The notes below the pieces were generated by a model. The model made no database searches, was not told where the DNA came from, and saw nothing but the letters and a program-made list of their open reading frames with translations. A stretch of 64,000 bases of DNA from Octopus sinensis (taxonomy: Eukaryota), in the NCBI RefSeq assembly GCF_006345805.1, contig NC_043026.1, positions 3,410,001-3,474,000 of the forward strand. Reading direction: 5' to 3'. The position numbers were made by a program, and so were the translations under genes. Positions 11,073 to 63,284 of this stretch are shown piece after piece (within the stretch, counting starts at the first letter, position 1; every line of letters starts with the position of its first letter).

Positions 11073-11237
11073 GGCGCAGGAGTGGCTGTGTGGTAAGTAG
11101 CTTGCTAACCAACCACATGGTTCCGGGTTCAGTCCCACTGCGTGGCATCTTGGGCAAGTGTCTTCTGCTATAGCCCCGGGCCAACCAAAGCCTTGTGAGT
11201 GGATTTGGTAGACGGAAACTGAAAGAAGCCCGTCGTA

Positions 11238-11279
<42 letters not shown>

Positions 11280-11433: not shown

Positions 11434-11439
11434 CAAAAG

Positions 11440-11870: not shown

Positions 11871-11879
11871 AAAGGGGTA

Positions 11880-12212
11880 AAGGGTAACGACCCACTTTGG
11901 TCATGAATGCCCATGGGATTGCACCAGGAAAGTTCCCCTCCAAGGCACAAGTCCGGGCAAGGTTGTTTTATGGAAAACCAAGAGTCGCCCATGTATACCA
12001 GCCTCCCCTCTCAAAGCCATTGATGCTATCCAAGGGAAAGGCAAAGGGGCCGATACAGCTGGGCACCAGTGACATCACAATTCATTTCTACAGCTGAGTG
12101 AACTGGAGCAAGATGAAGTAAAGAGTCTGGCTCAAGAACACAACACATAGCCCATCCCAGGAATTGAACCCACTACCTCATGATTGTGAGCCTCAACACT
12201 CTAACCACTGAA
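11880..12212 (-). mobile_element. Second tRNA-derived SINE family (copies also ~13040-13297 and ~20860-21160)
   Basis: Shared tttctacagctgagtgaactggagcaa...gctcaagaacacaac body; minus-strand head with ggttcaattcc B box. Confidence 0.7.
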
Positions 12213-15230: not shown

Positions 15231-17300
15231 ATGAACGTGAAGGCTAGATGGGCATCGTATGAAAGGAAACTTCTGCAAAAATTATTGTGTGATGAAAAAT
15301 TTTCTAGTTGGTTGGAGCGAGGCAAGAACGATACAACTAAAGGCAAATGCATATTATGCAAGCATGAAATTGCAGGTAGTTTGAGCCAAATTTTACGACA
15401 CGAGCAGAGAGAAAAACAAAGCAAGAATGCAAAGGAAGCAAAAAAGTCGACCAATTATTTCGAGGCCTCATCAATTTCTTCCCATTCCAAAAAGTAGCAG
15501 CTGCTGAATTAAAATATTGTGCATTTGTCGCTGAGCATATTCTCCCAATTTCTATTTTGGACCACTTACCTGGCCTTGTTTAAACACCTGTCCTGATTCT
15601 AAAATTGCCCAGGATGTAAAGTGTGCCTGAATGAAAGGTACATAAATCTTTCTTAAAGCCATTGGCCCCTACAGCTTCACACTTTATTAAAAAAACTTCA
15701 TTCATTAAAATTCTCACTCGTTATTGATGAAACAACTGATGTTTCAACTCTAAAAGCAACATGTCCTGGTTTCCAGATATTAAGATGTTGAAATTCAAAA
15801 GACAGTCAACGATTTTCTTACACTTATAGAAATACAGGATTGCAGTGCTACGGGTATATACAGCTGTCTTCTATCATTTTGAAACAAACAAGCTATTCCT
15901 CTGGAAAATTGATAGGTTTTGCCTGTGATAATGCAAATGTTATGATGGGAAGCAAAGGAGGTGTTCAGCACTTGTTGAAGCAGAACAGGGCAGATCTTTT
16001 CGTGCGAGCCTGTGTCTGTCATTCTTTACACTTGTGTTCATCAAACACGTGCAATGAATTACCGAATTCTGTTGAAGAATTGACAAGCATACTTTAGTCA
16101 CAGTCCTAAGCGTATCAATGAATTCAAAGATCTGCAGAAAATAGCTTCAATTGATCCTCACAAAGTCCTGCATGCAAGTTGCACTAGATGGCTGTCTCCC
16201 AAGAAAGTTGCGCAGTGCATTTTAGAGCAGTGGCCAACACTGCTGGCATATTTCGCACAAGTAACATTAGAGGGTGGGTGTCCAATTACGGCTCGACGAA
16301 TTCTCACTGAAATGAAGAATCCTCTTACAAATATGTATTTAGCATTCCTCTCTTTCATTTTAAATGACGTTAACAAACTAAACCTGGAATTCCAGGCCGA
16401 AGGCTATCGGATGCATAAGCTTAAAAGAGCCATCAACGCTGGAATGAAGGGAATTTTGAGCAATTTCATCAGACCTGACTTACTTTCTGTCATCAATGTG
16501 TGTGAGATTAATGTCAACGATGCAACGACATCCCAACCATTAGATTGTATCTACTTTGGCACTGGAGCTGAGAGAATTTTATACGAAAATGCTACCACCA
16601 TTGCCCTTGACGAATTGTTGGCACCGACAGGATATACGATTCTTTGTTAGTCTTTCAAATCAAATGCTTGTGCAGTTTTCATCTTGTGATATGCAGAACA
16701 ATTTGGGATTACTAGAGGTGTTGGAACCAACCAACCGTAACTGAAGGAAGACCAAGGTCAATTATACCACTTATCATGTGCTTCCCAAGTTTTTGTGATG
16801 AAAAAGATTTCGAAGAAATTATTCAGGAATGGTTCAACGTTCTTTCATCCCATATAATGAAGCAGAAAAATTTTGGTTTGCTGTTTCACAAGAGAAATGT
16901 GGTGATGAGTACTGCTACCCCCTGTTGCCATTCTTTATGCTCAGTCTTCTTTCTTTACCAGACTCCTCTGCATCGCCAGAAAGAATTTTCGCTGTTTTCC
17001 ACAATATCAAAACTAAAAGTCAAAATCACTTGAAAACTTCATCGCTTAACCCTTTAGTGTTGCATTATTCTGCCAAAATTAATCCTTTTTTACCCACATT
17101 GTTTTGAACTAATCATGCATTATCTTGTAACTATGAGATTTTGAAGAGGTAGCTGCTAATTTTTAAAACGATATTGTAGGGCTGGTGTGAGAGACCAGAT
17201 CTGGCCACATTGAACATAAAACAGGCAGAATACTTTTGGCCGGATATGGCCGGTTTAAATGCTAAAGGGTTAATGCTCTTTTGAGGTCAAAAACTTTGTT
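15231..17300 (+). pseudogene. hAT transposase pseudogene (BED-like finger, DDE, C-terminal dimerisation region)
   Basis: KCILCKHEI..ILRH (BED-like), FSLVIDETTDVST, IGFACDNANVMMG, CVCHSLHLC (CxxH), SSASPERIF; many stops and frameshifts. Confidence 0.85.
17050..17269. mobile_element. piggyBac-type MITE nested in the hAT transposase
   Basis: TTAA|CCCTTTAG...CTAAAGGG|TTAA (TSD 17046-17049 and 17270-17273); removing it restores the reading KTSSLNALLRSK. Confidence 0.9.
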
Positions 17301-18070
17301 ACAAAATACCGATTGTACGATGTGGGAGACTGATGAACAACTTTGTAAAACATTATTTGAAAATAATTGATACAACAGAGAAACTCCCCACGAAGACGAT
17401 TTTTCTTTTTGATGTCCAAACATTCAACGTTTCAATAAATGTTTTCCAAATCAAAAAAAATGTATAAAAAGTTCGTTTTGACTGTATTTGGGGGCTTCAG
17501 TAAAATTCTGTACGTTTTGAAAAAAACCTTGGCAGCACTGTTGATGCCAGAGTTTCATAACTGGCAGATAAAATGTACCCATTATACTCTTGGAGTGGTT
17601 GACATTAAGAAAAGCATTCAGCTGTAGAAACCATGCCAAGATAGACTGGAACCTGGTGCAGCTCCCCAGTTTTCAAACTGTCCAACCCATGCCAGCATGG
17701 AAAATAGACATTAAATGATGATATGTGTGTTGCTTACATTCGTGCTCTATGGCAGTCACTATATGTGATGTTCTTGTCACCTGTCAACAACTTGAGGGCT
17801 TATTTGGTACCTTTCTAGGCTTGTTAAATAAAAGATCTCTTCCTTGAAAAACAGTTAATGATTAGTAACAAGAACAGCATTCAGATGTAAAACAAAGCAT
17901 TAATATGTTTATTTAACCCAGGTAAGCAGAAAGAAAATCAAAATAAAATGAAATGGATAGTTACACTTTAGTAGGAATACATGTATGTGCCGTCGTGTGT
18001 TTTGAGAGAATGATTTACCATGTGCTTATTTATGTAGCTTCACTCCTGTACAAATGCATTTATGTGTTGT

Positions 18071-19627
18071 TCAGATTGTGATGGGTTTCTCTCCTGTATG
18101 AATACACTTATGTTTTGCTAAGGCACCATTTTGAGTGAATGATTTACCACAAATGTCACAGTGATATGGTTTATGCCCTGTGTGTGTATGTTTGTGAGTA
18201 ATTAAGTTACCTTTCTTAGAAAATGATTTATCACAGACATCACATTGAAATGGTTTATCCCCTGTATGAATGTGCTTGTGATTGGTTAAGTGGTGATTTA
18301 GAGAGAATGATTTGCCACAGATATCACATTGATATGGTTTCTCACCTGTATGGATGTGTTTGTGTGTAATTAAGGTACTTTTCTGAGAGAATGATTTACT
18401 GCAGATATCACAGTGATATGGTTTATCTCCTGTATGAATGTGTTTGTGGGCAGTTAAGTGCTGATTTAGAGAGAAGGATTTACCACAGATATCACATTGA
18501 TATGGTTTATCTCCTGTATGAACAAGTTTGTGTGTAGTTAAGCTACCTTTCTGAGAGAATGATTTACCACAGATATCACAGTGATATGGCTTCTCTCCTG
18601 TATGAATTCGTTTATGAGTAGTTAAGTTATCACTTTTATAGAAAGATTTACCACAGATATCACAGTAATATCGTTTGTCATTTGAATGAATGAGTTTGTG
18701 AGAAGATAAGTTATATATTTGAGAGAATGATTTACCACAGATATCACAGTGATATGGTTTCTCTGCTATATGAATGTGTTTGTGTAATGTTAAGTTACTT
18801 TTCTTAGAGAATGATTTACCACAGATATCACAGTGATATGGTTTTGGCTTGCCTCCTGTATGAGTGTATTTGTGTGTTGTTAAGTTACTCTTCTGAGAGA
18901 ATGATTTACCACAGATATCACAGCAGTGGGGTCTAGGATTATGTCCTGTATGAATGTATAAGTGTGTAGTCAAATTACTTTTCTGAGAGAATGATTTGCC
19001 ACAGATATCACAGTGGTGTGGTTTTGCATTCTGTCCTGTATGAATGTATAAGTGTGTAGTTAAGTTACTTTTCTGAGAGAATGATTTGCCACAAACATCA
19101 CAATGATATGGCTTCTCTCCTGTATGAATACGTTTGTGTCTATTTAAGTCATCATTTTGAGAGAATGATTTACCACAGATATCACAGTGATATGGCTTCT
19201 CCCCTGTATGAATACGCTTGTGAGTAATTAAATTATATACTTGAGAGAAGGATTTACCACAGATATCACAGTCATATGGTTTCTCTCCAGTATGAATACG
19301 TTTGTGTGTAGTTAAGTTACTTTTCTGAAAGAATGATTTACCACAGATATCACAGTGATATGTCCTTTTTTGTGTATGAATACGTTTGTGTTTAGACAAT
19401 TGATTACTTCGAGAGAATGATTTACCACAGATCGCACAGTGATATGGTTTCTTCCCTGTGTGAGTATGTTCATGAGCAGTTTGCTTACTTTTTAAAGTGA
19501 ACGACTTCTTACAGATGTCACAGTAGTATGATGTTTTACCAACATCTTTTGATATCTCATCAATAAATCGAATCATTCTAGACTGTGTTTCCGATTTAAC
19601 ATTGTCCTCCCACAATTCAATTTCCAT
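18071..19627 (-). CDS. C2H2 zinc-finger protein, 17 tandem fingers, 518 aa, no KRAB/BTB domain visible
   Basis: Uninterrupted ORF with [19 protein letters not shown] repeats; first ATG at 19627 ([13 protein letters not shown]); the listed ORF start at 19699 is a TTG. Confidence 0.93.
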
Positions 19628-19971
19628 ATCTTTTCTTGTTTCAACACAAGATGCAGAGGCTATTCTTCTTTTTAATTTTAATTTTCTTATTCTCAGCAAA
19701 TACTTCCACTGCTACATCAACCATGATCTTAGTCAATATCTGAAGATACTGCAAACTCATTTGCAATCAAGTTTAATTACAATGTAAAAATCATCTTGTA
19801 ACATTTTGCAGACTGCAAAAATTTTGCTAAGTCAGAGGAAATATTTCCCAGTAACAAACACAGTTGTTTTACTTCAGCATCACATTTTCCATTAATTTTA
19901 GCAGATGATAAATAATGATGATCTATCCAAGGTGAAGAAGATATTCTTGAATTCCAATGTCAAATGATAAT

Positions 19972-23231: not shown

Positions 23232-23640
23232 CTATTTACTATTTTACTATTTTACTTGTTTCAGTCATGTGACTGCGGCCATGCTGGAGCACCGCCTTTA
23301 GTCGAGCAAATCGACCCCGGGACTTATTCTTTGTAAGCCCAGTACTTATTCTATCGGTCTGTTTTTTGCCAAACTGCTAAGTGACGGGGACGTAAACACA
23401 CCAGCATCAGTTGTCAAGCAATGCTAGGGGGACAAACACAGACACACAAACACACACATATATATATACATATATACGACAGGCTTCTTTCAGTTTCCGT
23501 CTACCAAATCCACTCACAAGGCATTGGTTGGCCCGGAGCTATAGCAGAAGACACTTGCCCAAGATGCCACGCAGTGGGACTGAACCCGGAACCATGTGGT
23601 TGGTAAGCAAGCTACTTACCACACAGCCACTCCTGCGCCT
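23232..23640 (-). mobile_element. Full-length dominant SINE (tRNA head, internal TA/CA microsatellite, conserved 3' half)
   Basis: Near-identical to copies at 25872-26302(-), 33871-34312(+), 48478-48882(-); diverged copies at ~26700-27105 and ~62860-63180. Confidence 0.9.
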
Positions 23641-25500: not shown

Positions 25501-26094
25501 CAGTGCTTTTCAAACTTTTTGCTGGAGCGGAACCCCTAGGAAACACTCCACTGGCCCGGGGAACCCCTGTGCAATAATTTAATAGTCTTATGCACACATA
25601 TCTGCACAGGAGAATTAAAAATTACTGCCGATTTTAGCAGTTTTCTAACTTCTTGCGGAACCCCTGGACTGTACTAGTTGCCGTGGTAATTGCCATTCTG
25701 TTTTGCATGACCAGCCACAGTATGTAAAGCAAGACAAGAGGCCTACAACATAATTAGAAGGATTCCCAACATTGTTGATGGTGATTAACCCTTTGGAGAC
25801 GGAGCCTCATTTGGAGTTTCAGTGCCAAGAAGACAGCCCTTTTCACAAGCCCTACACAGGGCATACTCTATACTCTTTTACTTGTTTCAGTCATTTGACT
25901 GCGGCCATACTGGAGCACCGCTTTTAGTCGAGCAAATCGACCCCGGGACTTATTCTTTGTAAGCCCAGTACTTATTCTATCGGTCTCTTTTGTCTAACTG
26001 CTAAGTGACGGGTACGTAAACACACCAGCATCGGTTGTCAAGCAATGCTAGTGGGACAAACACAGACACACAAACATACACACACACACATATG

Positions 26095-26136
<42 letters not shown>

Positions 26137-27139
26137 TATATACGACAGGCTTCTTTCAATTTCCACCTACCAAATCCACTCACAAGGCTTTGGTCGGCCC
26201 GGGGCTATAGCAGAAGACACTTGCCCAAGACGCCATGTAGTGGGACTGAACCCGAAACCATGTGGTTGGTAAGCAAGCTACTTACCACACAGCCACTCCT
26301 GCAATATTAAAAAAAATGTTCCAAAAAACAAAAACAAAACAATTACTTTACAGTTATATAAAACTATATTCTTGTAGGAAATTGAATGAACGAATACAAT
26401 CTTCTTTGTCATTTCACTTTTCGCCCGATCGATCAGCCTTGTCGTCTCCTAAGTGTTAAGGATGTCACTGTAATTCCACCTTCCTTGTCAATGAGCTCCA
26501 AGGAATGGCTGGATTTGTTTAGACCAGTTTACCAACAAACTACAGAACTGAGCAGTGGAAGTCTCCAAGAGTTTTTTGAACAAAATAACAAAATAAAAAG
26601 AACGTAAAAGTTGATACACTTAATGACGAAAGTATGGGAAAACTTGTGGGAAATGTGATTATATTAAGAAGTATAGATTCCGTGGCAAAAGTCTGTCTTT
26701 TCTCTATTCTTTTCCTTTATTTGTTTCTGCCATGCTGGAGCACTGCCTCAAAGGGTTTTTTTTTTTTTGGTTGAAGAAATCGACCTAGAACTTATTCCTT
26801 GTCAGCCTAGTACTTATCACATCAGTTTCTTTTGCTGAATTGCTAAGTTACAGGGATGTAAACACCAATATCGGTTGTCAAGCAATGGTGGGGCTGGGAA
26901 CAAACAGACTCACACACACACACACACACACGCATACGACGAGCTTCTTTCAGTTTCCATCTACCAAATCCACTTCACTCATAAGGCTTTGGTCGACTCA
27001 TGAGGCTATAGTAGAAGACACTTGCCCAAGGTACCACGCAGTGGAACTGAACCTGGAACCATGTGGTTGGGAAGCAAGCTTCGTATTATAGCCAGGCCTG
27101 TGCCTATCCTCCAAAATGTTTGAATATCTGCAACCTCTC

Positions 27140-33513: not shown

Positions 33514-34032
33514 CGATTGAGGGGACAAACGAAAGAAGGGCACTCAATCAATTTAGTGGGAGTTACATGTACATGTATGGATCAAAACAGTTTAATTCAA
33601 ATTCGTTGATATTCTTGAGTTTCAAGCGTGATGCTAGCCGTCATCCATGGGTTGACAGCCGATGTCGGTATGTTTACGTCCCCGTAACTTTATGGTTCGG
33701 CAAAAGAGGTCGATAGAATAAGTACTAGGCTTAAGGAACCAGTCTTGGGGTCGATTTGTTCGATTAAAAGCCTTCAAGGCGGTGCTCAAGCATGGCCGTA
33801 GTAAAATGATTGAAAACCAGCAGAAGATAAAAGATGGGGGTTATTCAAATAATATACTTACACATATATAGGCGCAGGAGTGGCTGTGTGGTAAGTAGCT
33901 TGCTAACCAACCACATGGTTCAGGGTTCAGTCCCACTGCGTGGCATCTTGGGCAAGTGTCTTCTGCTATAGCCCCGGGCCGACCAATGCCTTGTGAGTGG
34001 ATTTGGTAGACGGAAACTGAAAGAAGCCTATC

Positions 34033-34094
<62 letters not shown>

Positions 34095-34606
34095 GTGTGT
34101 GTGTGTGTATGTATGTGTGTGTTTGTGTGTCTGTGTTTGTCCCGATGTTGGTGTGTTTACGTACCTGTCACTTAGCGGTTCGGCAAAAAGAGGATGATAG
34201 AATAAGTACTGGGCTTACAAAGAATAAGTCCCGGAGTCGATTTGCTCGACTAAAGGCGGTGCTCCAGCATGGCCGCAGTCAAATGACTGACACAAGTAAA
34301 AGAGTAAAAGAGAGATATGTATATGCATGTACACACGTGTGTGTATGCGTGTGTGTGTGTGCGTGTGTGTGTGTGTGTGTGAATGTTATTACGTCACAAC
34401 ATAACTCGAAAACATCTTTCCCCACTTCATTCTGCGCTCATCAAGATTTCCGTTGCCATATCCGTCTGCCAGTTGAAGTCTTTCTACAGTTTACTTTAAA
34501 TATTTTAAGTTACTCACAGTCTTACTGGTTCTTTCTTTTGATCTTTTTGTTTTCTATTTTCGTTTTTCACTTAAACAAAAACCAAAACTTTTTACCTTTC
34601 ATCGTC

Positions 34607-36652: not shown

Positions 36653-39600
36653 CCTTCCCTTTATATCGTTACGTAGATGCATCAGGACCTCTGTATTTAA
36701 GTAGTACCACTCTTTCTATATTTGTTCTTGTTTTAATTTATTGGCATATTGTTTCCTTTTCTTCTTTCTTCCTTTCTTTGTTGAGTGTTTTCTGCTTATT
36801 TCTGTTAGTTCTGCATTTTATATTTTTGTGTCTATTCGTGAAATAATGTACTCTCGTCCATATCTCTTGCCCAATGTTGCAGAATATTCTTGTTCGTATC
36901 GTCATGCTTCTTCGTCGTCGTCTTCCGCTAAATTGCCGCCGTTAAAGATGTCAGCATATAAGAATTCATCAGTGTTAAAATGGTCTTCGTCTTTTCTGTC
37001 GCCTTCAGTGAATTTGCCCTCGCTAAATACATTTCCGTTCTCGTCAATGTCACCGCCTGCGTTCTCAGTGTCTGTATCAACGTTACCTAAAATATATAAA
37101 ACGTCAGATGACTATCTAGACACCATTAAACGCAGGGCTCATTACTTTACTCTTTTCAGGAATCCTACTCCCTGTCCCACCTCTAAGGTACCCGCTGAGT
37201 CAAAGATACGCCTCAACAGGAAACTGTATCCACTTCCAACCCAGAAATTCAACCAGAAGAAAGTTGTGAAGTTTTACCCACTGGACACTGTCTACGAGAT
37301 ACCTACTTTGGAGGAACTGCAGAGCGAGAAGAAGGAGCCGAAACGACCGACCCATGGAAGGAAGAGCTGAAGAGACAGCAAATGGTAGGTTTTTGATTTT
37401 TGTTGTTTATTTTTTTCTAATGGTAAGTATGTTGTAGCATTTATTATTCTATTATTTTTTGTTCTTCGTTTATTTTTCTGCATTTCTTACTTTATTTTTA
37501 CTTTTTGTGTTTCTCCCTGCTGAGGTTTATTCGCGTATTTAGACTGTATGTATGTACGCGTGAATGTAAACACACACAGACACACACTTTTTTTTATTCT
37601 TTTACTTGTTATAGTCATTAGACCAACGTTCCATGTGGCAGGCTTTGGCATGAAACCAATGGTTACCTTGTTAGCCCACAAATAAAGAGAACTTATCTAC
37701 CAATGCAGTGTTGAGCCCTCATTCTCACTGTTCCATATTAGCGAGTCAGTTGAATTAGGTACTTAAGTTGAAGCACCAAATCAGTGCGGTATTATCCGTA
37801 CAACTCAAATAGGTGAATAAAATCAAAATAAGCAACAGGATATCAAGGAGTGATGCAGTACGACCGTTTCAAACGTCTTCATTTAATTGAACAAGGCAAT
37901 CATTTCATCAATTTAAATGCAGGGCTATTCTCAGCTGCATAAATAAATGAATAGAATTTTGAATCAGTAGGACGCTTATTTTGATTATATATATATATGT
38001 TTTTTCCATGGTTAGTAAGTATTATGTCTAAAATTTTCTTTTAATTCAACTCATTAAAATAATCACCACTTACTAGCTAATTATGATTATATATTAATAG
38101 AAATAATATATATTTATATAAATATGAAATGATTTCTATATCTTTTATCCTTATATAAGATACCCTATATAAGATACTAAAATTTACTGAAATCATTTAG
38201 AAACTTGTCTGAAGAATATTTACTTAAATTTCTGAATATAGAATCTGAATGTCAAATGGTAGTTAGGCATTAAAACCTCTAGAGCACTAATAGTCTATCT
38301 TCCCTTACCCTTCTAACTTCAACATACTAGCTTTTTGCTATAGGTCATTCAAATGTATCTGGGCTGGGTTCCTCAGAATAAGAATAGATTTATTGGTTTT
38401 GACATTTGTTGTACCCTTTCCTATATTCATAAATAGAAAAATTCTTTGTCTCCATCCAACCAAAAATAAAATCCCCCTCACCACTGACAGATCTACAGTC
38501 AGAGAGTAGATTTAATACAATTTCTGAAATTTATTTAGCAAATTCTAACTTCAGCAGCAATATTTTAAGTTCTTGCTCTTCTTGTTCTGTACTTTTCCAG
38601 GATTAATCACTTCTTGTTCTGTACTTTTCCATGTTCAATATTTAAGAATATTCTAGGATTCTGCACCTGCATTTTTGATTTTAGTTCACTGTCTTTCCAG
38701 GCAGCACTTCTGTTATTATAATTATGATATTTACCTTTATAACTGAAAAAAATGATACTATGGTAAATATTTTTTTAAATATTTGTTTAAACTTAGAAAT
38801 TTTGTTTGCATATAAAAATATCAAAGGATTAACAGCAGCATATCTCTTACAAATAAACACATTTTTAAACAATTTTTATTATAAAATAATGCTATATTCT
38901 AATTAAATAATTAATAATTAGGTTTTTTCATGAGTGAAATATTTTTTTATATGTTTATATGTACATGATTTAATAATTTAACAAAAAAATAAAAATTAAT
39001 ATAAAATTGCAAAAAAAAAATCATAACTATTTTTAGGTTTAATATTTTTAGACAAAACTTTTTCCCAAAAATTCATCTGGATGAACTCTTTCATTTGAGT
39101 TCAAATAATATTTTTCTCTTAAAAGGATAAAAGTATTTTGATTTCTTAAAATTATCCCCTTCTTTTTACACTGAACGCCAAACAACAGCTAATATTTTTT
39201 GTCAAGGTTTTTCACCATAGACAAAGTTTCCTCTTACAGAGCTCTTTCATCTGAACTAAACCCAAACATAGAATAGCTCTGAAAACAGCTTGGAAAGTTG
39301 ACTAAATTCCCTTAGAAAAACGTTAAAAAAATAGCAACCATTGCCACTGCAGAGAATCAAATGTGTACTTCTCAAAAACTCCAGTTAAGTCTGCTGAATT
39401 ATTAATCTAAGCAACATAATACATTAGATACCATCTTTTATAACGTTAAATATCTTAAAATGACAAAAATATTTTAATCTTTTAAAATATCACTTCTTTT
39501 TCTCAGCCACAGACAAATCGGTGCCTGTTTCCCATCGTAACAAGCAAAGCTGTTGTCTGCTTAAAGCTACAATACTTATGTTCTGAACCTTTGTTTTAGA

Positions 39601-48385: not shown

Positions 48386-49833
48386 ATATATATATAATGA
48401 ACCATTTCTTAAACATACACGATATAGTCTATAAATTTGGGATGTTTTTGAATGATAATATATTTTATCATCAGAATATACTCTTTTTCTCTTTTTCTTT
48501 TTACTTGTTTCAGTCATTTGACTGCGGCCATGCTGGAGCACCGCCTTTAGTCGAGCAAATCGACCCCGGGACTTATTCTTTGTAAGCCCAGTACTTATTC
48601 TATCGGTCTCTTTTGCCGAACCGCTAAGTTACGGGGACGTAAACACACCAGCATCGGTTGTCAAGCAATGCTAGGGGAACAAACACAGACACACAAACAT
48701 ATTCACACACATACATATATATATATATACATATATACGACAGGCTTCTTTCAGTTTCCGTCTACCAAATCCACTCACAAGGCATTGGTCGGCCCGGGGC
48801 TATAGCAGAAGACACGTGCCCAAGATGCCACGCAGTGGGACTGAACCCGGAACCATGTGGTTGGTTAGCAAGCTACTTACCAACCAGGGTCCAGTCTACG
48901 CTACTAGTACCTAAATCCTCATAGAATCGGAATCTACACCATCTGAAGCATATTTGTAGGAAATTCCATGAAAAATATCCATTTTTCTGCAAGATATTAG
49001 GGAAGAAACATATACTTCATAAAGGAACATTTATACACATGTATATTTATATATACCTACATATACACACGTCTTTGTAATGTTTTTTAAACACATAAAA
49101 CTTATAGATGCATACTTTTATAATATTTTACACTTAAACCGCCACAGGACAATATTTTCAGAGTTGCTTCTTAAAGTGTCCTTCACTTTTTTGATGAAAA
49201 ACGATACAAATTTCAGAGTATTTGGCTGTTATTTCTAGCATGCTGTTAGGTCATCTATGGGACAATATTTGACATGGATGATTTGTAAATTGTCCTTCGA
49301 TTTTTATTTGTGATGAAACAAAAATGTGAAGGTTTAGGTGGCTCTTTCTAGCATGAAATGAGACCATATACAGATCAATTTTATTTATGAATACTTCTTA
49401 TCTGTCCTTCAAATTTTATATGAGAAATAAAGTGGTTTCTATTTCTAGCATGAAAAATGACCAGCTATAGGAAAGCTTTTACTGAATACTTCTTAAGTGT
49501 CCTCCTCTTTTGTATGAACCCCAAACAGCAACAACAACAACAACAACCCTACGAGGACGAAAGGCAATGTTTGTGCGTGTGTGCAGTTGGAATGTCACTG
49601 CAACAACAACAACAACAACAATCTATTCTTATTAAACGTTAAAAACTGTCAGATGCAGACTGCACACACGCACACACAACGCTGATGACGACAATGATGA
49701 TGATGATGATGGAGGCGGCGGTGGTGGTCGTCTGCTGTTGTTGTTGTTGTTGGTCGTCTGCCTTTTAATGGAGAATCAATGATTATGAATGTCTCTGGTT
49801 TCGGACCAGACATTCCTATACATACATGCATGC

Positions 49834-49866
<33 letters not shown>

Positions 49867-50129
49867 ATACACACACACACAAACATACATACTTATAGCC
49901 TTATTTCTATACATACATTCGTAAATATGTGTGTATATATATATAAACACATCTATATATACTGTATATAAATATACACACACACACACACAAAGAGAGA
50001 GTGTTGAGGAATGTTACAACAATAAGTGTTAGTGTGTAGAATGCAATGCAGGTTCGATTCCCGGGTGAAGCCATTTACAACAACAACAACAACAACAACA
50101 AGATTGAAGTTTAATATTTCTGGAAATAT

Positions 50130-53100
50130 TTATTTGTCAAAATAAAAGAAAGCAAAAGATTGACGTCCAGGAATAATTCCAAAAACCATCAAAGAATTTT
50201 CTGAAACATCCAAACCAAGAACTTCAGAGACTTCATTATCATCCCCTCTGAGGAGTAAATATTTTGGATTATCTTCTAATTCCAGGATTTTATCATCTTC
50301 AGATGTTTCCTCTTCAATATGTCGAGGTATTTCGTAAATATTGTTATCTGAATCTGTTATATAAACACATTCACCAATTATGGTCAGACGAGGTCTTGGA
50401 ATATAATCTCCCAGAAAATAAAACTTTCCTTCTATTCTTATCCTCCTCACCAAAGACTTTTCCCTGAACAATTCCACAAAACACAAAACTTGCCAATCTC
50501 CAAATTCCTCCTCCACCTCCATCTCCCTCCTCAAAATAACAATATCACCAAAAGATGTGACTCCCACATCTTCCACCCCTTCATCTCCCTCAAACCTTCC
50601 AATTCTCCACATCTTCCCATGACACACTTCATCTTTACATTTCCCATCTTTGATATCAACCACATCCACATAATAAGGGTCAAAGATGTTGGCGCCTTTG
50701 CAAACATAGTAATCCTTGTTGTTCTCCCACATTCTTTCGTATTTCTTGTCTCTCTCTTCTTGAGTTATGTCTCTAATATAATGACCACCACACACGAGTT
50801 GATTGTCGTTGTATTTATAAATCCTTTTATAGTATTTCTCAGTTCTGATGGTTTTTAAACAACAGAGATCCCTGTTGAAGACCCTCATTTCTCTCCCAAA
50901 GGCAACAATGAAACATTCCTCTGTCCACCGACATATGTCCAGTGGTGGTCGTTGTTGTTGTTCATGTTGAAGTATGTCCACTGTTGTTGTTGTTGTTCTG
51001 ATTAATGTGACACTTTCTCGAAACATCAACACACTCACATTCTCATCTAACTTAATTACTTTACTGTTCCGGTCCCTAATGTCCCTATAATCATAATTAA
51101 CAGGTTCCTCGAATGCAGGAATGGAAAAAGGGACCATTGCTGTCCTATATGGAAGTCTCCTCACTGATATTTCATCAACTCCCGAATTATTAATCTCCGC
51201 TATGTAATTACCACATCTCACCTTTAATCTACCTTTACCAATTATTTCACCTGATTTACCTCTTCCTCCTCCATCTCCATCTCCTCCTCTGTATTCCAAT
51301 TTATTAATTAATTCATTACTGAATATTTCCTTGTTCGTTTCAGATGTAATGGAAGGGAAACGAAGACCAGAATCAAGTTTTAATAACGACACAGATTCCA
51401 GAATGTTCACTTGGTCCCCATCAATCTTTATGCAATGACATTCAATCAATTCATTATGTACACACCAGTAAATACTCGCCACTTTTCTCCATATTACACC
51501 ATAAGGGATGAGACTCGACCAAACTTGAGATGTCTGCAAATCTTCTCCATTCAGTTGAAATATTTCTTTCCTCTTAGGAACCGTGGCCATTATGTGTGAT
51601 TCTTGTGTAAAACACACACCACCAACTAAACTTGCAACATTTCTGTGACGTAGCAACTGGCCATCTTCATCGAATATTTTAACATTTCCATTATTGGCTT
51701 TTTCACACACAACTGTCTTTCCTTCCTCAGAGACATCAAAATCTTTTACTTGAACAGGACATTCGTCTGTTTGTAAACGAGCAACCGGGAAGCTGTCTTG
51801 ATTCACCATAAACAACCCTTCAACATACAATTCATTCCATCTCATTGCACTCCTGGGGCTTCCAACAAACCTTGGTCCTTTACAGTCTATACTGGAGAAA
51901 TCTACTTCATCTTTATAAATTCTTTTATTTAAAAATATTCTCTTGTATTCCCCATTCTGGGTCAAACACAAAATGTTTTGATATCCAAATGAACCTGAAT
52001 ATTTCTCCCACCGACCATAAATGTACAAAAAACTGTCATCAATTGTCATCCTGTCATCACCAGAATACCCCATGTAGTGTCTGACTGAATGTAAATATTG
52101 ACCACCACTGTTGAAGAAAATGATGAATCTTCTGTTGAAGACAATGATGACATCTTCATCAGTAACTTTAATATCCTGGATTTCATCAGAACAAACTCCA
52201 TCTTCGTTTCTCCTTATTAATGGTTCAGGTATGTCTATTTTTTTTATTTCCTTCACACTCGAATGTATTTCATCAATATCAACAAAATGCAAATGACCTC
52301 CATCTTCCCGTTCACTAAAAACCAGTTGATTGTTTGATAAAGAAGCCACACAATTATAATTATTTCTCGTTTTGTAAATTACCAATGACAATGGAAATTC
52401 CACTTTTAATGTCCAGAGTTGGGGTTTATTATAACGACGATCCCAACACGTAATGACCAGTGTGTTTGACTGCCATCGACACATTTTAATATCATAATAA
52501 ACATTCATTTTGATTGAATCCAAAACGTGACCATCCAATGTGAATATCTTAATGTTTCCATTCGTCCAGTCCCATCCTGCAATCAGATTATTTTCAGTAA
52601 GAACCAAAGATCTAATCCACGCTGGTCCTTTGTCTCTCAAATGTTTAGGGAGAGGAATATGTCTGGCTTTATCAGAAACTGTCAGGTCCTGTAGATGTAA
52701 AGTGGAAGACAACATTTCACTGAGAGAAATGTTTCTGGAAAATACATCCACCAGGTCGATATAATAATTAAGTTGATTATTAGTAACGAGATCATTAACC
52801 AACAAATTCTGATCGTTTATGGCAAACATACGGCTTCTGTCTATCAGATAAACAGACGTTTGGTCAATAGATCCACCTTGGAGACTGAGGGGACGTTTCA
52901 CTTTGGACATTAAAACACTGGGGACCATCTGACAACCGCCATGACCACCACCACCTATTCTAGTGTTGTACTGAAAAGCTTTTCCTCTAGTAACAATTAA
53001 TAGCTTTTCTATTTTTTTGTCTATTGATAATGATTTCACAAACACAGGGATATTAATTGTCTTAATTACTTCAACTTGATTATAATAATTGATGGCTAAA

Positions 53101-55520
53101 ATGTCTAAATGTGATGTTTTATCACAATAACAAACAATTTCACCTTCACCCATCTTACACACCCGTACATAAGGCTGCCTTAATGATACACTTCTCACTG
53201 TCTTTGATAGGTTTCCGATGACCCTTAATTGTTTCTGTAGGGGTAATGTGACCCCTATATGATTAGAATCCCATCGACATATATCTGTGGCTGTAGATGG
53301 CAGAGATAATCTGGACACAATGTCTCCTTCCTCAGAAATGTACAACAAGCAATCATGCTTGATGTCGGACACCACCAACTGTCCGTTGGACAGATTACAT
53401 ATTTCGCCAATGACAAGTTTTTGGTCATTCTCCTTTTCTTTGAGTCGTAGATTTAGATTTCTGATATAAGGATTTTTCGTGGGTAAACAACAGCCAGACG
53501 ACCGGTCTTGATACTTGTAAAGAAGAACCCTGTTGAGTTGAGTGTCCGGGACATAAAGAGTTCCTTGGAAAACAGCAATGTGAGGGTGAACAGGGAAAGG
53601 CAGTTCCCACTGCCATTTCATTTGTCCATATAGATCGTAACATCTGAGAATAGAGTGTCTTCTGAAGAGGACATAGAAATAAACATTATCAGAGTAGATG
53701 TGATGAGGGTAGCCATAGAATGGAAGGAATTTTTGAAAAAGTTCTTCACCACATGTGGAATAAAATACCATTTTATTTTCGTTTCCATCTACGACTACAA
53801 AATTAATTGGAGTTGCAGCAATGCTGACATTATGATGTCTGAGAGAAATTCTTTCTGCAATGTCAACTTTATCTTCGTTGATCCATAGGATATGGACCTC
53901 GCTTTTGTTTTCAGTGGTGGTCACAGCTAGACACTTATTTGATACAATATGACATATTTTCATGTAACCAGTTTGCACCTTTATTAAAGGGCCTTTTCTT
54001 AGTTCAGGACAGGTGATATACTGAAACCCTTTCATTTCAGGATAAAATACCAGGAATCTGTTTGCGTTTATTCTACAACAGAAAGAAGGAAACTCAAGGA
54101 AAACTGAATTATTTTGGTTAATTATTTCCCCATTATCAGTGAATAATTTAGCTTTCTTGTTTTTGTAAATTATTAATATAGAAGATGTAGACATAGGTAG
54201 AATATTAGTAACGTTGTAGCAATCCTCAATATGAATATAGTTGTTCAATGTTGGGGTCCATAGCTGGGGGTTATATGACTGCCTGGGCCAAAAGTCTTCA
54301 TTTGTTCCAATGATATGAAGGACATCAAAATAATCGGTTACAAAAATGTTTTCTTTGCCAACAGAAATATGGCGGCATTTCATGCCAATTTCTCTTGTTG
54401 TCACAGCACCTGTACCCGATATCCGATAAATAATATGTCCCTGAAGGACATAAAAATTGTTTTGGTACACAGAGATGTGGCTTGGAATGTCCAGGGAATT
54501 GGTATCCACCTGAAATAACTGCTGGCCATCCACATTGTAACAGGTAACCCTGTTAATATTGGAAAAGGATACTAAGAGTTTATTTTGTGCTCCAACAGCA
54601 ATATCTGTAGGTGTTTCTTTGGTTATGAATTTGTATTTTATCCTATTCTCTCCCCAGTCAATGACGTATATGGTCTGATCAAACATTTCTACACCTATAA
54701 ACGTAGAATGTTCCAAATAGGAAACCAAGATTAATCCTAGCTGAATTCTTTTGATTTCCAAACTTAAAGGGTTGATAATAAGAATCATCTTTCGAAAGGG
54801 GAGGGTGGCGAGGACTGTGTCTTCACTGATTCTAGTAAAATCAGTGACAGAAGATGAGCAACGAACATCGTTTCTGTTGCCGTCTCTTGTTACACAACAT
54901 ATTGTCATACAGTGGCGGGAATATGTTACAATACCCCCTTGTATGACAACGATATTGGATATTGGGTTGCTTAAGTCTTCACCAGATTCCTCAATCTCTA
55001 CTTCTCTGGTCACAACTGGCCGAAGAGGACGAAATTTTGTGATTACTTTTGGTGGTTCAATGGTCTTGTGGTTGTATGGGTTACAGGTGACATAAATGTC
55101 AAAGAGTCTTTGTTGAAACCAATCAAAGTTTTGGTGAACAAAATCATTATTTTGTTCTGCAATTTCCAGAAATCTTAGCATTTTACGTTTGATATTACGT
55201 AAAATTTGAGATCCATTTAAACCCAGAGAGTCCCTGCGCTTACATTCATCCTTTACATAATCTATAAACGTATTGATGTGGTCTGTTTTGATTAGTGTTC
55301 GGTAACATGTCACAATATGAAGAAAACTTGGTAACATGGACTTTTCCTGTTCTTTAGATTTCTTTGTGTCTTTTCTTTCCTGTTCTTCTGTTTTCTTTGT
55401 GTTTTGTGTATGTAATATTTGGGGAAGAATTGGTGTAGTTTCCTTATAAATTGCTGTTGTATCACAGACTGTGGCAGGAATGAGAGCCAATATTTTGTTT
55501 TCTTCATTAATCTTCTCCAT
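50130..55520 (-). CDS. 1796-aa uncharacterised protein: short N-terminal helical region + six tandem NHL-like beta-propeller domains
   Basis: Uninterrupted 5391-nt ORF in AT-rich DNA; in-frame stop just upstream of ATG 55520; a blade motif recurs six times at ~230-290-aa spacing; no signal peptide or TM segment apparent. Confidence 0.9.
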   Translation of the reverse strand: MEKINEENKILALIPATVCDTTAIYKETTPILPQILHTQNTKKTEEQERKDTKKSKEQEKSMLPSFLHIVTCYRTLIKTDHINTFIDYVKDECKRRDSLGLNGSQILRNIKRKMLRFLEIAEQNNDFVHQNFDWFQQRLFDIYVTCNPYNHKTIEPPKVITKFRPLRPVVTREVEIEESGEDLSNPISNIVVIQGGIVTYSRHCMTICCVTRDGNRNDVRCSSSVTDFTRISEDTVLATLPFRKMILIINPLSLEIKRIQLGLILVSYLEHSTFIGVEMFDQTIYVIDWGENRIKYKFITKETPTDIAVGAQNKLLVSFSNINRVTCYNVDGQQLFQVDTNSLDIPSHISVYQNNFYVLQGHIIYRISGTGAVTTREIGMKCRHISVGKENIFVTDYFDVLHIIGTNEDFWPRQSYNPQLWTPTLNNYIHIEDCYNVTNILPMSTSSILIIYKNKKAKLFTDNGEIINQNNSVFLEFPSFCCRINANRFLVFYPEMKGFQYITCPELRKGPLIKVQTGYMKICHIVSNKCLAVTTTENKSEVHILWINEDKVDIAERISLRHHNVSIAATPINFVVVDGNENKMVFYSTCGEELFQKFLPFYGYPHHIYSDNVYFYVLFRRHSILRCYDLYGQMKWQWELPFPVHPHIAVFQGTLYVPDTQLNRVLLYKYQDRSSGCCLPTKNPYIRNLNLRLKEKENDQKLVIGEICNLSNGQLVVSDIKHDCLLYISEEGDIVSRLSLPSTATDICRWDSNHIGVTLPLQKQLRVIGNLSKTVRSVSLRQPYVRVCKMGEGEIVCYCDKTSHLDILAINYYNQVEVIKTINIPVFVKSLSIDKKIEKLLIVTRGKAFQYNTRIGGGGHGGCQMVPSVLMSKVKRPLSLQGGSIDQTSVYLIDRSRMFAINDQNLLVNDLVTNNQLNYYIDLVDVFSRNISLSEMLSSTLHLQDLTVSDKARHIPLPKHLRDKGPAWIRSLVLTENNLIAGWDWTNGNIKIFTLDGHVLDSIKMNVYYDIKMCRWQSNTLVITCWDRRYNKPQLWTLKVEFPLSLVIYKTRNNYNCVASLSNNQLVFSEREDGGHLHFVDIDEIHSSVKEIKKIDIPEPLIRRNEDGVCSDEIQDIKVTDEDVIIVFNRRFIIFFNSGGQYLHSVRHYMGYSGDDRMTIDDSFLYIYGRWEKYSGSFGYQNILCLTQNGEYKRIFLNKRIYKDEVDFSSIDCKGPRFVGSPRSAMRWNELYVEGLFMVNQDSFPVARLQTDECPVQVKDFDVSEEGKTVVCEKANNGNVKIFDEDGQLLRHRNVASLVGGVCFTQESHIMATVPKRKEIFQLNGEDLQTSQVWSSLIPYGVIWRKVASIYWCVHNELIECHCIKIDGDQVNILESVSLLKLDSGLRFPSITSETNKEIFSNELINKLEYRGGDGDGGGRGKSGEIIGKGRLKVRCGNYIAEINNSGVDEISVRRLPYRTAMVPFSIPAFEEPVNYDYRDIRDRNSKVIKLDENVSVLMFRESVTLIRTTTTTVDILQHEQQQRPPLDICRWTEECFIVAFGREMRVFNRDLCCLKTIRTEKYYKRIYKYNDNQLVCGGHYIRDITQEERDKKYERMWENNKDYYVCKGANIFDPYYVDVVDIKDGKCKDEVCHGKMWRIGRFEGDEGVEDVGVTSFGDIVILRREMEVEEEFGDWQVLCFVELFREKSLVRRIRIEGKFYFLGDYIPRPRLTIIGECVYITDSDNNIYEIPRHIEEETSEDDKILELEDNPKYLLLRGDDNEVSEVLGLDVSENSLMVFGIIPGRQSFAFFYFDK

Positions 55521-55639
55521 TTTATGAATATAGAATTATTATCTTTTTCTGTTAAATATATTCTTTTTTGTGGATTTTGTTTTCTTCCTTTCGAATACAA
55601 TTTATCTCTTCAAAATTCACATTATTTTTTACAGCAAAG

Positions 55640-55660
55640 CTGAAATAAAATAAAAACTTT
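55640..55660 (-). promoter_or_regulatory. Candidate splice acceptor for the large coding exon (exon would start at 55639)
   Basis: Minus strand gtttttattttatttcag|ctttg, 119 nt upstream of the ATG. Confidence 0.5.
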
Positions 55661-58600
55661 ATTAGTTCTGTGAAAAGCTTTTGATAAAATAATATTTACT
55701 TGATTCATTCAAAGAATTTCAAGGAAAACACACATTTCATTAAATATATTAAACAAATTGTTTATTTGACAGTGAAGTTAAACATTTAAACTGTTTTCAA
55801 TGGAATAATCATTAGAAATAACCTTGAAGATATAAATACACCATTATCTTTATTGACTGAATATAAGTGATGGTGAAAAGTTTTGTAGTAAGAAGGAATA
55901 TAAATATTTTGTTGAGGTTATTTCTACAGATATTATCGGTAGAAATTATAGCCAGGACTGATTTCCTGCTATAACATTTCATATTGAAACGTCAGACGGA
56001 AAGAATGAGATCAAAGACAAAAGCATCTGTTGTTTATTTACATCTGATGTCTCGATACAAAACATTTTAGCAAAAAATCAGAGCCAACTATAATTTCTAT
56101 GGAATATCAATAGAATAATGTGAAAAACACTGCTAACAAAGTAGAATGTGGTGTTGACTTCTAAAACGATTTAATATATTTTACAGGAATTTATGGTTGC
56201 ATAATGAAATACCACGTCCCTACAAATCAGGAATATAAGTATTATTAATAATTATATACACTGGAAATGATGTGACAGTCATGGTTGGCTTGGTTTCCAT
56301 CATATTTACCTGGATTAACAGATACCAATAAAGCTGGAGATGAAACTGTTCTTAACCTGACAAATGCTGTAAATCTCTCGACATTTCAATATAATCCACA
56401 CAATTATCATACACAACATTGATTAACTCGGAAAGCTTATCCAAAGATGGGCTTTCATATAATCACACTGATAGACAGCATGTTGAGAGGATCGTTATTA
56501 TTTGTTGCTGATTGAGATCATAAAGATTGGTTAATGAATAAGCCCAATTAATGAAAGGTAGGTTCATCTTAATTATCTTTAATATAAGGGACAATGTTTG
56601 GGTAGCAATGAGAAAGATGTGTTTGTATGAAAAAGGGGTTTGGCAGGTGAAGTGTGTTTTGTTTTGTGTTAGGTGAGGAGTTATAACTTGGTGTAGTTTA
56701 TTATGAAGTATTGGGGGTTTAATGAGGTGGATTAGGAAATATTGGTGGGGTGTTTAATGACATTCTGGTGACGTATCATCATCAGAATGATCCTCCACCC
56801 CTCCTTGGTCTATGAAATAATGACTGTTACTCTATTGACCCCAGGAAGAATAAAAAATAAAAGAGACATTCTTCAGGATGTCAGCTCTTTGAAAATACAT
56901 GGACTAAACAACAACATATTTTTAGGAAAAGCTGGATAAGGCTATGTTGTTGTTATTGCTGTTGTTGTTGACAACAAAATTTATAAAGAGAAAAGCAGAT
57001 AATTGCAAATATTTGAACTGTAAAATTAAATTGGAATTAATGTTTATCTTTCACTTGTGCCATTCTACTTGGTTTATTTTGGGGAAGAAAAACCTACAAA
57101 ACCCCTCATAATAATTCGAATTTAATCTAATTGTAGATGTATTTATATACACATGCATACATATATATGAATGACTGTGTATAATATATACACAAGGATG
57201 CACATATGTATATTTATACATCCATACATCTGTATGTATGTATAATCATCATCATTTTACCCCCACTTTTCATGCTGGAATTGGTTGGATGGTTCAGAGA
57301 ATATCTTGCCTGAAGTTACATTTTCTGGTTTTCTTTCTACAGCTGGATGCTCTTCCTGACACCAACCACTGCACAATGTGCACTGGGTGCATCTTATGGC
57401 ACCATCGCTAGAGACAATCGCCATGTCCTTGACAAAACTAAAGGTTCCCCTCAATCTCTGGGTTTCACATATACCTTGGGATGGGTGTGAAATCTAGGGT
57501 AATAAATATATGAAAAGGAGTGGCTGAGTGTTGGGGAGAGACCTATGTAGGTCCAGTAACATTCCTAGTTTCATTGGAAGAATGGTGGAGAGAAGAGATT
57601 TACTGCCAATCTTTGTCACAGCAGTAAGATAGTAGAGTAAAAAGAAGAAGAGAAAGTGATTGAGAGATGAAAGGTAGAGGTAAGGGTGATAGGAGCGTGG
57701 CAGTAGGGACACAGGTGACAGTGACATGGGCGATATGAAGGATGTGTGATATTTGAAGTGAATGATAAGTTATGTGTATTAGAGGGGTGAGTGATAGGGG
57801 TGTGGTAAATATGAAAGGGTAACAAAAGGGATGCAGGTGTAGACTATATATATACAGGTGCAAATGGGAAAAATAGAACTTGACATGAAAGAATATGTGT
57901 ATTGTATTTTTTTTTATCATTGAGCAGAACAAAGAGAGTGACTCAAGATCTGAGAGTTTCATGTGTTGACACTCATCAATCTGGTTCTTTGGAGGTCTGG
58001 GAATATACCTCCCAAAAACCAGTTTTATAAATGCCAATAAATGAAACTTTTGGATCTTGGGTCACTTTGTTACTTCGGTGAAATAATATTAATATAAATA
58101 TATATATATATATACACATACACACTAACATATACATAGACACACATGTGTAATTATATGAATATACCTTCACATACCTATGTATAAATATTTGTGTCTA
58201 TGTATGCTTAGAGATATGAATCAATGAATGACAAAAGAACAAGAGTTACGTAGACACCTTCATTAGCTTCCAGCTGATTCTGCTACAGGAAGCAGTGAAC
58301 TCGAGCTGAGTGTGCGTGCGCGTAGGTGTCTGTGCATTTGTTTATGTTTGCAATCTGTTTTAAGTTGCTCCAAGCGGAAACATTGTCAACCAATCACACC
58401 CACCTTGGAAGACATGGGAAATAAGAACTTTTGTTCTTGCAAAATAGGAAGGCTGTCTGCCTGTAAAACAAGGCTACAATAATATATTCATCTAATCCAT
58501 GCTAGCATACAAAGTCAGATGTGCAATCAAACATAAGTAAACCCATGTTTATTCATTCATATACTCTTATGCATGCATAAACACACACACACACACGTGT

Positions 58601-62628: not shown

Positions 62629-63284
62629 GTATCATCATCATCATCGTTTAACGTCTGCCTTCCATGCTAGCATGGGTTGGACGATTTTGACTGATGGCTA
62701 GCAAACCAGATGGCTGCACCAGGCTCCAATGTTGATCTGGCAGAGTTTCTACAGCTGGATGCCCTTCCTAACGCCAACCACTCCGAGAGTGTAGTGGGTG
62801 CATTTTACGTGCCAGTAAGGCGACGTGTATATATCTATATTCTTTTATTCTTGTATTTGCTTCAGTCATTTGAGTGTGGCCATGCTGGAGCACTGCCTTT
62901 AGTCAAACAAATCAACCTCAGGACTTATTCTTTCTAAGAGACCAATAGGTCTCTTTAGCCAAATTGTTAAGTTACAGGGATGTAAACATACCAATATTGG
63001 TTGTCAAGCTCTGTTGGTGGGAGAAACAGAGACACATAAATATATATGATGGGCTTCTTTCAGTTTCCGTCTAACAGATCCACTCACAAGGTTTTGATTT
63101 GCCCAATGTACCATGCAATAGAACTGAACCCAGAGCCATGTGGTTGGCAAGCATGCTTCTTACCACACAGCCACTCTTGTGCCCTTGCCCCACTGCTTCT
63201 AATTCTTGTCACCTCCCACTTTACCACTCCCTCTTTACGTTGTCTCTCATAATATATATATATGTTATGTATGTATATATATAT

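Follow-up and report, generated by a model that had tools for sequence, protein, structure and literature searches.

The subject of this article is a single gene, and the family to which it belongs, in a 64,000-nucleotide stretch of Octopus sinensis DNA that we call the window. On the minus strand of the window, at 50130..55520, lies one intact open reading frame (ORF) of 1796 codons, started by an ATG and free of internal stops, just where a preliminary description of the sequence had placed a 1796-residue protein. The analysis shows the product, of ~205 kDa, to be a ligase-less protein of six propellers of the kind found at the tails of TRIM proteins, from an expanded family that is restricted to octopods and whose units evolve at rates of their own. 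The DNA around the ORF has ~37% G+C, and a frame of such length would not persist there by chance. The exact 1796-residue protein was not present in the protein collection that we searched. Its locus has a close counterpart in O. vulgaris, at 9.57 Mb, with which the window is collinear at ~95% nucleotide identity for more than 7.7 kb.

The gene had been called intronless. For the coding sequence (CDS) the term stands: five family genes from three Octopus species each have a single uninterrupted CDS (P0001, P0003 and P0045 of O. vulgaris, P0026 of O. sinensis and P0019 of O. bimaculoides). Two in-frame stops precede the ATG so closely that the CDS cannot be extended within this exon. For the transcript, the term probably goes too far. 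A polypyrimidine tract with an AG, ~120 nt before the ATG, makes an intron in the 5′ untranslated region (5′-UTR) plausible, and by sequence a non-coding 5′ exon with its intron is likely. A non-coding block of ~300 nt further upstream is conserved between octopuses (Table 1).

The six units, U1 to U6, were described from the start as highly diverged, and so they are. Self-BLAST of the protein gave no internal match, even at E=10 and word size 2, a Pfam scan of it found no repeat or domain, and the homology is seen by profile methods only; it was the silence of self-BLAST that made profiles necessary. A blade motif recurs six times, at residues 225, 478, 744, 1011, 1300 and 1526 (spacings of 253, 266, 267, 289 and 226 residues), each copy where it was first reported. 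The claim that five copies follow an [F/Y]xx[D/E/N]G strand end was slightly generous: the ending is clear in U2 to U5 (LFTDNG, YISEEG, IFTLDG and IFDEDG), U1 has VTRDG, with V for F/Y, and U6 has none. We then cut a 15-member family alignment into an N-terminal part (N, residues 1-160) and the six units and compared the pieces by hhalign. Units match one another in register, with probabilities of 89% for U3-U6, 80% for U4-U6, 77% for U4-U5, 63% for U2-U4, 59% for U3-U4 and 34% for U2-U5; the N-terminal 160 residues match none of U1 to U6. HMMER models of single units also cross-match different units of other family members at E<1e-5. The six-unit repeat is real, though ancient.

Where might the units have come from? 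In the TRIM-like proteins of molluscs, which carry a RING, B-boxes and a coiled-coil, an NHL-type propeller forms the C-terminal, target-binding tail. An exhaustive profile search of 1.84 billion representative proteins, with residues 161-1240 as the query (U5 and U6 left out), found nothing outside the family other than mollusc RING/B-box proteins with NHL propeller tails. The non-family matches have E-values of 9e-6 to 1e-3, or 9e-6 to 6e-4 for the carriers of RING/B-box plus NHL. Pfam assigns RING, B-box and NHL to P0065 from a cuttlefish, B-box and NHL to P0061 and P0068, RING and B-box to P0062 from the mussel Potamilus, two B-boxes and a PML-like coiled-coil to P0067, and NHL-like sequence to P0066 and P0069 from Mytilus. 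NHL scores reach 29.1 bits in P0065 and 47.1 bits in P0068, the gathering score of the Pfam NHL family (PF01436) being 20 bits. The stretches matched are the C-terminal propellers of these proteins, and the motif first noticed in the octopus protein is visible in them, for example as PPHGICLWANYEVVVTLPENKQICFV and APRDVAAIDNGQVVVTLPVRKELQFI.

Seven such tails were built into an external tail profile. The preliminary description had suggested an HHpred-type comparison of each unit; done by hhalign, it matched every unit to the tail profile in register (U1 97.4%, U2 93.5%, U3 98.7%, U4 98.2%, U5 96.2% and U6 94.4%) and the N region at 0.1%, which is no match. The matches of U5 and U6 are independent ones because both were absent from the query that had found the tails. 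Over blades 1-2 the tails carry a signature made of a G.LVV.D strand, a strand end [FY]xxxG and P.D[IV]C.W....[IV].VTLP..K.L.[IV]. U3 has it in full, and U1 and U5 have most of it; U4 and U6 keep the CRW/[IV]xV part, and in U2 it is degenerate. In the form common to tails and octopus units the signature reads G.LVV.D ... P.D[IV]... [IV].[VL]T[LI]P..K.[LI].

A search with the tail profile gave more than 120 proteins, mostly from Mytilus, under source names such as TRIM2_3, TRIM2-like, TRIM71, TRIM56 and B box-type domain-containing, and several related Mytilus tails pass the Pfam NHL cut-off, at 20.6-27.6 bits. This search, a reciprocal and word-indexed one, brought back Mytilus paralogues for the most part and nothing from octopus, and is uninformative for cephalopods. 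Pfam and Protein Data Bank (PDB) searches that started from the single protein or the family profile gave sub-threshold matches only. The window protein has no NHL match in Pfam, and two of 15 members have one at E=3.4. In the PDB the single protein matched only the NHL domain of Brat (E=0.12), and the weak single-blade similarities, to Brat (E=0.12), TRIM71 (E=1.1) and Thin (E=3.1), are below significance. We dropped PF23381, a precomputed match on P0029 and many Mytilus tails, when the local Pfam did not reproduce it. The NHL membership of the octopus units is therefore transitive, since they match tails that pass the NHL threshold and no member passes it directly. With that proviso, each unit is a diverged copy of the NHL-type propeller tail of mollusc TRIM-like proteins.

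The rest of the TRIM protein is missing. Pfam scans of 20 family members (the window protein and 19 others) found no RING, B-box or other domain, there is no RING or B-box coding potential anywhere in the window DNA, and in-frame stops precede the ATG, so the protein is without RING and B-box just as first described. We also looked for an upstream exon that might supply them; nothing of the kind lies within the window. Without a RING or B-box, the protein cannot itself be a RING-type ubiquitin ligase. In TRIM proteins the coiled-coil follows the B-box and mediates antiparallel dimerisation. The predicted helices at residues 56-146 were considered as a remnant of it, for which hhalign gave no support: against four TRIM-like coiled-coil regions the probability was at most 0.5%, a result that is neither for nor against such descent because coiled-coils rarely align. 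Neither a signal peptide nor a transmembrane segment was found (the maximum 19-residue Kyte-Doolittle mean is 1.4), and the encoded protein is predicted to be soluble.

We ran AlphaFold2 (AF2) on two halves of the protein, the limit being 1200 residues, with 36-sequence alignments. It gives confident, beta-rich, propeller-like domains for five of the six units. The strands agree with the NHL pattern of six blades, each of four antiparallel strands and ~40-45 residues (~24 strands in U1 and in U2, 22-23 and an N-terminal closing strand in U4), blade number being counted from AF2 strands and not from coordinates. Foldseek matches these models to multi-propeller proteins of the PDB with E-values of 1e-13 to 1e-21 (IFT-A subunits, LRP4/LRP2, Utp tandem WD40 proteins, DDB1 and SF3b130), which confirms a chain of propellers at the level of predicted structure. 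The top matches are a mixture of WD40 and YWTD multi-propeller proteins, and they cannot settle the propeller class because only half-length, multi-domain models were submitted. The preliminary description had expected six separate propellers from such modelling. Five units are modelled with confidence, and the models match multi-propeller proteins; U5 stays below 50 in predicted local distance difference test score (pLDDT), and the end of U3 is poor. Taken with the tail-profile matches, of 93-99% for all six units, the models and Foldseek uphold the original proposal of six tandem TRIM-tail or NHL-like propellers.

The units have characters of their own. U3 has a Gly-rich loop, RIGGGGHGG (residues ~855-865), which expands in paralogues; U5 is the least variable unit over 15 aligned members; U6 is acidic, with a net charge of -16 over residues 1481-1796, and U5 has one of -7. 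Ahead of the propellers, a helical N-terminal domain of ~100 residues had been proposed. Three helices are indeed predicted at residues 56-146, at low confidence. They have no similarity to the propeller units, and their matches in the PDB are only weak ones to coiled-coils and helical bundles (E>=2.8). A hidden Markov model of the N region is conserved in Argonauta.

The family is an octopod one, as had been suspected. Word-indexed searches gave 39 clusters, all from O. vulgaris, O. sinensis and O. bimaculoides and nearly all without Pfam domains; the exhaustive profile search added members from Argonauta hians. Across all searches, including that of the 1.84 billion representatives, members were found in Octopus species and Argonauta only. 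Their database entries are all called hypothetical or uncharacterized, and many of the O. vulgaris gene models are partial. Grouped at 90% identity, the O. vulgaris members form at least 27 clusters, and one 29.19-Mb contig (OX597841.1) holds 22 of them. The four copies that we looked up span 2.4 to 22.7 Mb of it, dispersed and in no tight tandem. Each member that was checked has its six units in one and the same order. In Argonauta the order N-U1-U2-U3-U4-U5-U6 is kept one-to-one, and the architecture therefore predates the Octopus-Argonauta split. A divergent lineage (P0045/P0073) has U1 to U6 in order, and the N region was not detected in it.

Seven family genes were read at the DNA level, and the 5.4-kb ORF is intact in six of them (the window gene and the paralogue loci L001-L004 and L006). 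The seventh, the O. vulgaris paralogue L005, has a frameshift near residue 465. L006 (O. vulgaris P0004) was suspected of disruption by a transposon, which is ruled out: at ~8590-8970 it has an in-frame expansion of ~125 residues in the Gly-rich loop of U3, made of two tandem repeats, of the DGSISSS and GGGHHRPLR types, and its 1927-codon ORF is intact. The gene model had spliced out this low-complexity expansion. At the same U3 loop P0019, P0024 and P0034 carry insertions of other kinds, while in P0026 an acidic run is found in U4; both sites are hotspots of length variation. The idea that the genes are the cargo of a mobile element was rejected, as similarity between paralogue flanks fades gradually and there are no termini or transposon domains. 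Three extra copies of the last 82 codons (residues 1715-1796) lie at L005, at 11761-12006 (+), 16730-16975 (-) and 17163-17408 (-). They are 85-87% identical, within 6 kb downstream and in both orientations; the window has no such fragments.

Do all units evolve alike? The preliminary description had suggested measuring the ratio of nonsynonymous to synonymous substitution rates (dN/dS) for each propeller, and the units do differ. From Nei-Gojobori counts on five intact CDSs (ten pairs), dN/dS for U1-U3 is 0.2-0.57 in all ten pairs (0.2-0.3 for U1 and 0.4-0.5 for U2), and the genes are therefore under purifying selection. Among three close copies (the window gene, L001 and L002) the ratio is 1.7-2.0 in U4 and 2.2-2.8 in U6, with no rise in dS (0.02-0.05); between distant copies both units drop to 0.5-0.7. 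The excess over 1 in U4 plus U6 has binomial p of 0.02, 0.003 and 0.003 in the three close-copy comparisons, which share lineages. Fisher tests set U4 plus U6 apart from U2, U3 and U5 with p between 0.004 and 2e-6, again across comparisons with shared lineages.

The changes in U4 have a preferred place. Among five close paralogues, 44 of 83 sites (53%) vary in the B-C and D-A loops, against 13 of 48 (27%) in the A-B and C-D loops and 20 of 135 (15%) in the strands (p=0.006 and p=3e-9). U1-U3 have no such loop bias. Standard propeller topology puts B-C and D-A loops on one face, so the variable sites of U4 would lie together on a single loop face. Paralogues also seem to trade segments. In L002 (O. 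vulgaris P0003) dS against the window gene is 0.77 in U1 and 0.02-0.08 over the rest of the gene, a mosaic that indicates segment exchange, by gene conversion or recombination, between paralogues.

What might such a protein do? The reading that we prefer, with confidence that falls a little short of even, is a multivalent intracellular binding scaffold with a constant part and a variable part that recognizes fast-changing ligands. U1-U3, U5 and the N-terminal helices would be constant and would serve assembly, oligomerisation or partner coupling, with U1-U3 and U5 held by purifying selection. U6 and one loop face of U4 would be the variable recognition surfaces, and their rapidly changing ligands would most plausibly be components of pathogens or selfish elements. 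The logic would be that of expanded TRIM and NLR recognition families, minus the built-in effector. The selection pattern fits a recognition role and is no proof of one. A bolder version, which we regard as rather doubtful, is an octopod recognition system made of NHL-type propellers only, in which several independently evolving heads (U4 and U6) would sit on a constant chassis and diversity would come from duplication, whole-propeller exchange and loop expansion. If true, it would liken the family in function to the arms-race families TRIM5/finTRIM or NLR, in a new architecture with no built-in effector.

Several facts weigh against our preferred scaffold. No family member is at the Pfam NHL threshold (the best, P0045, has 18.5 bits), AF2 has little confidence in the fold of U5, and its model of U3 is poor in the last blades. 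The dN/dS values come from simple counts, in three comparisons that have lineages in common; relaxed constraint may account for part of the overall ratio of 0.9 against the closest copy; and the strands were labelled A-D on the AF2 secondary structure and not on coordinates. Rapid evolution is also seen in proteins outside immunity, those of reproduction among them. An explanation that we judge unlikely is that the protein is a scaffold or adaptor with no part in immunity (cytoskeletal, transport, reproductive or neural), its fast units being due to relaxed constraint or to selection of a sexual or lineage-specific kind. The best Foldseek matches are indeed scaffolds (IFT-A, DDB1/SF3b130 and Utp proteins), the NHL domains of TRIM2/3 bind motor and cytoskeletal proteins, and octopus genomes have other large lineage-specific expansions, with a C2H2 zinc-finger gene in this very window. 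Yet dN/dS is significantly above 1, and only in two units and on one loop face, and copy expansion with exchange of segments between paralogues is more typical of families driven by conflict.

The NHL domains of Brat, LIN-41/TRIM71 and Mei-P26 use one propeller face to bind RNA motifs; if the octopus propellers did likewise, the array might read several motifs at once and so control the fate of mRNAs. The weak direct sequence matches of the octopus protein are to just such RNA-binding NHL domains (Brat, TRIM71 and Thin), and multivalency would suit long RNAs. We consider an RNA regulator of this sort distinctly improbable all the same: no unit is strongly basic (the net charges of U5 and U6 are -7 and -16), the nearest relatives are expanded mollusc TRIM2/3-like tails and not orthologues of TRIM71 or Brat, and fast-evolving presumed binding faces are atypical of conserved RNA regulators. 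Very unlikely, in our estimate, is a decoy or regulator of canonical TRIM-like ligases, in which an array of tails with no ligase would compete for the same targets or present them. Homology of the units to whole TRIM tails and absence of the ligase module are what such a decoy would show, but the units are very diverged from present-day tails (E 1e-5 to 1e-3 in the library search), the six-unit architecture is older than the Octopus-Argonauta split and no cephalopod TRIM partner was identified. Given that divergence and that age, direct competition with a specific TRIM is not indicated. The least credible reading, and alone among the rivals in being largely excluded, is that the ORF family is selfish or has no function, its many copies being associated with repeats or in decay. 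The genes are multi-copy, intronless and dispersed on the chromosome, many O. vulgaris models are partial, one copy is frameshifted and the overall dN/dS is 0.9 against the nearest copy. Against this stand the 5.4-kb ORF, intact in six of seven genes read, with a single uninterrupted CDS in the P0045 lineage as well; the six units in the same order in Argonauta; dN/dS of 0.2-0.5 for U1-U3 in every pair; and flanks whose similarity fades gradually, with no transposon domains or terminal structures.

How new is this protein? The domain type and the expansion of mollusc TRIM-like proteins are already known, including a bivalve-specific expansion of B-box proteins (PMC8382680). What is new is six propellers in a chain that has no tripartite motif, diversified unit by unit; in the literature that we searched there is no description of such octopod proteins. 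The whole C-terminal propeller of the mollusc TRIM-like proteins (the Mytilus TRIM2_3, TRIM71-like and TRIM56 models and P0065 of the cuttlefish) is homologous to each octopus unit, and both groups are lineage-specific expansions. The octopus chain differs in having six propellers and not one, in lacking RING, B-box and a recognisable TRIM coiled-coil, and in being confined to octopods. Animal TRIM-NHL proteins (Brat, TRIM71/LIN-41 and Thin/TRIM32) have the same six-bladed propeller with four-stranded blades, but their architecture differs from that of the octopus protein, whose sequence similarity to them is below significance.

Several propellers on one polypeptide are also found in DDB1/SF3b130/CPSF160, IFT-A, the Utp tandem WD40 proteins and LRP4/LRP2, and in the LRP proteins they are six-bladed and in series, as here. 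There is no sequence relationship to any of these scaffolds, and the octopus units are contiguous copies of TRIM tails, not WD40 or YWTD propellers. Unlike the YWTD arrays of LRP, the octopus protein has no Ldl_recept_b or EGF match in Pfam, no signal peptide and no membrane anchor. DDB1, CPSF160 and SF3b130 consist of three seven-bladed WD40-like propellers, one inserted in another, and a C-terminal helical domain. Their match is at fold level only (template modelling score 0.15-0.30), the octopus units being contiguous and collinear with single TRIM tails. With families in conflict, such as the B30.2 domains of TRIM5/finTRIM and the leucine-rich repeats of NLRs, where these traits are established knowledge, the octopus family shares expansion, chromosomal clustering, exchange between paralogues and dN/dS >1 on loops. 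It differs from them in its recognition fold, an NHL-type propeller, in the want of an effector or signalling domain in the chain, and in having several modules per protein. Cephalopod innate immunity is poorly understood, and many receptor families expanded in bivalves are apparently lacking in cephalopods. In this family octopods would have a concrete candidate for a recognition system of their own lineage, and the family shows a single binding domain multiplied into a stable array whose order has been kept since before Octopus and Argonauta parted.

Table 1. Features of the six-propeller gene, and copies of an interspersed repeat, in the window
Feature	Position	Strand	Basis
Complete single-exon CDS, 1796 aa plus stop codon	50130..55520	-	collinear at ~95% nt with the single-exon O. 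vulgaris P0001 gene
aa 1-55, K/E-rich N-terminus, predicted disordered, highly variable between paralogues	55356..55520	-	pLDDT 24-33; N-terminal alignment
aa 56-146, three predicted helices (56-98, 103-123, 132-146), pLDDT 40-56; candidate oligomerisation/adaptor region	55083..55355	-	AF2
aa 147-184, linker with invariant K162/F163 (TKFRPL...VVTRE..IEESGED)	54969..55082	-	invariant alignment columns
U1 propeller, aa ~185-410, ~24 strands, pLDDT ~80; motif VTDFTRISEDTVLATLPFRKMILII at aa 225	54291..54968	-	AF2
U2 propeller, aa ~427-670, ~24 strands, pLDDT 70-86; motif at aa 478	53511..54242	-	AF2
U3 propeller, aa ~700-905, first 3-4 blades pLDDT 65-80, rest poor; canonical tail motif ATDICRWDSNHIGVTLPLQKQLRVI at aa 744	52806..53423	-	AF2
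U4 propeller, aa ~953-1234, pLDDT 70-92, fast-evolving; variable sites in B-C and D-A loops	51819..52664	-	AF2
U5 unit, aa ~1241-1455, pLDDT <50; tail-propeller homology over first ~150 aa; Gly-rich low-complexity loop	51156..51800	-	AF2, profiles
U6 propeller, aa ~1456-1796, pLDDT 75-94, enlarged by long hairpins, fast-evolving; motif PLDICRWTEECFIVAFG at aa 1526	50133..51155	-	AF2
AATAAA hexamer over the stop codon, consensus match only	50129..50134	-	motif match
Two stop codons (taa taa), in frame, 16-21 nt before the ATG	55536..55541	-	direct sequence reading
Polypyrimidine tract and AG (ttttattttatttcag), ~120 nt before the ATG; candidate 3′ splice site of a 5′-UTR intron	55640..55657	-	sequence
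Non-coding block, 1.4-1.7 kb before the ATG, conserved in O. bimaculoides and at the O. vulgaris counterpart; candidate promoter/5′-UTR exon	56930..57220	-	sequence comparison
Copies of the ~400-bp interspersed repeat	48488-48882, 23239-23621, 25876-26287, 33889-34313, 11091-11434, 26766-27080, 62841-63165, others		

The surroundings of the gene deserve a few words. Its 3′ flank, at ~49500-50110, is dense in microsatellites of the types (TTG)n, (TG)n, (TA)n and (CAA)n. A string resembling a tRNA T-arm, ggcttcacccgggaatcgaacc, stands ~60-80 nt beyond the stop codon; as a tRNA or other RNA gene it was rejected, ARAGORN finding no tRNA and Rfam no family. A repeat of ~400 bp is interspersed through the window in at least 10 copies or fragments, 68-98% identical, and occurs as well in the flanks of the paralogue loci L001-L004. 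No Rfam family and no tRNA matches it. Between 34000 and 40000 the G+C content goes down to 0.27, with an AT skew of -0.26 and a GC skew of -0.27 to +0.12; this is probably low-complexity or repeat DNA. A 209-aa ORF at 36741-37370 (+) has no Pfam match.

Two further elements can be named. On the minus strand, 18071-19699 holds a 542-aa ORF with at least 14 C2H2 zinc fingers, which shares 57-66% identity with the zinc-finger part of the O. vulgaris model P0008. In that model, zinc fingers and a six-propeller family member form one protein, probably through a fusion made in annotation. On the plus strand, a decayed Helitron extends over 4248-9309 as five consecutive non-ATG ORFs with STPR repeats, Helitron_like_N, a PIF1 helicase and a Pif1 2B domain, and its G+C content is ~0.50 against ~0.37 in the rest of the window.

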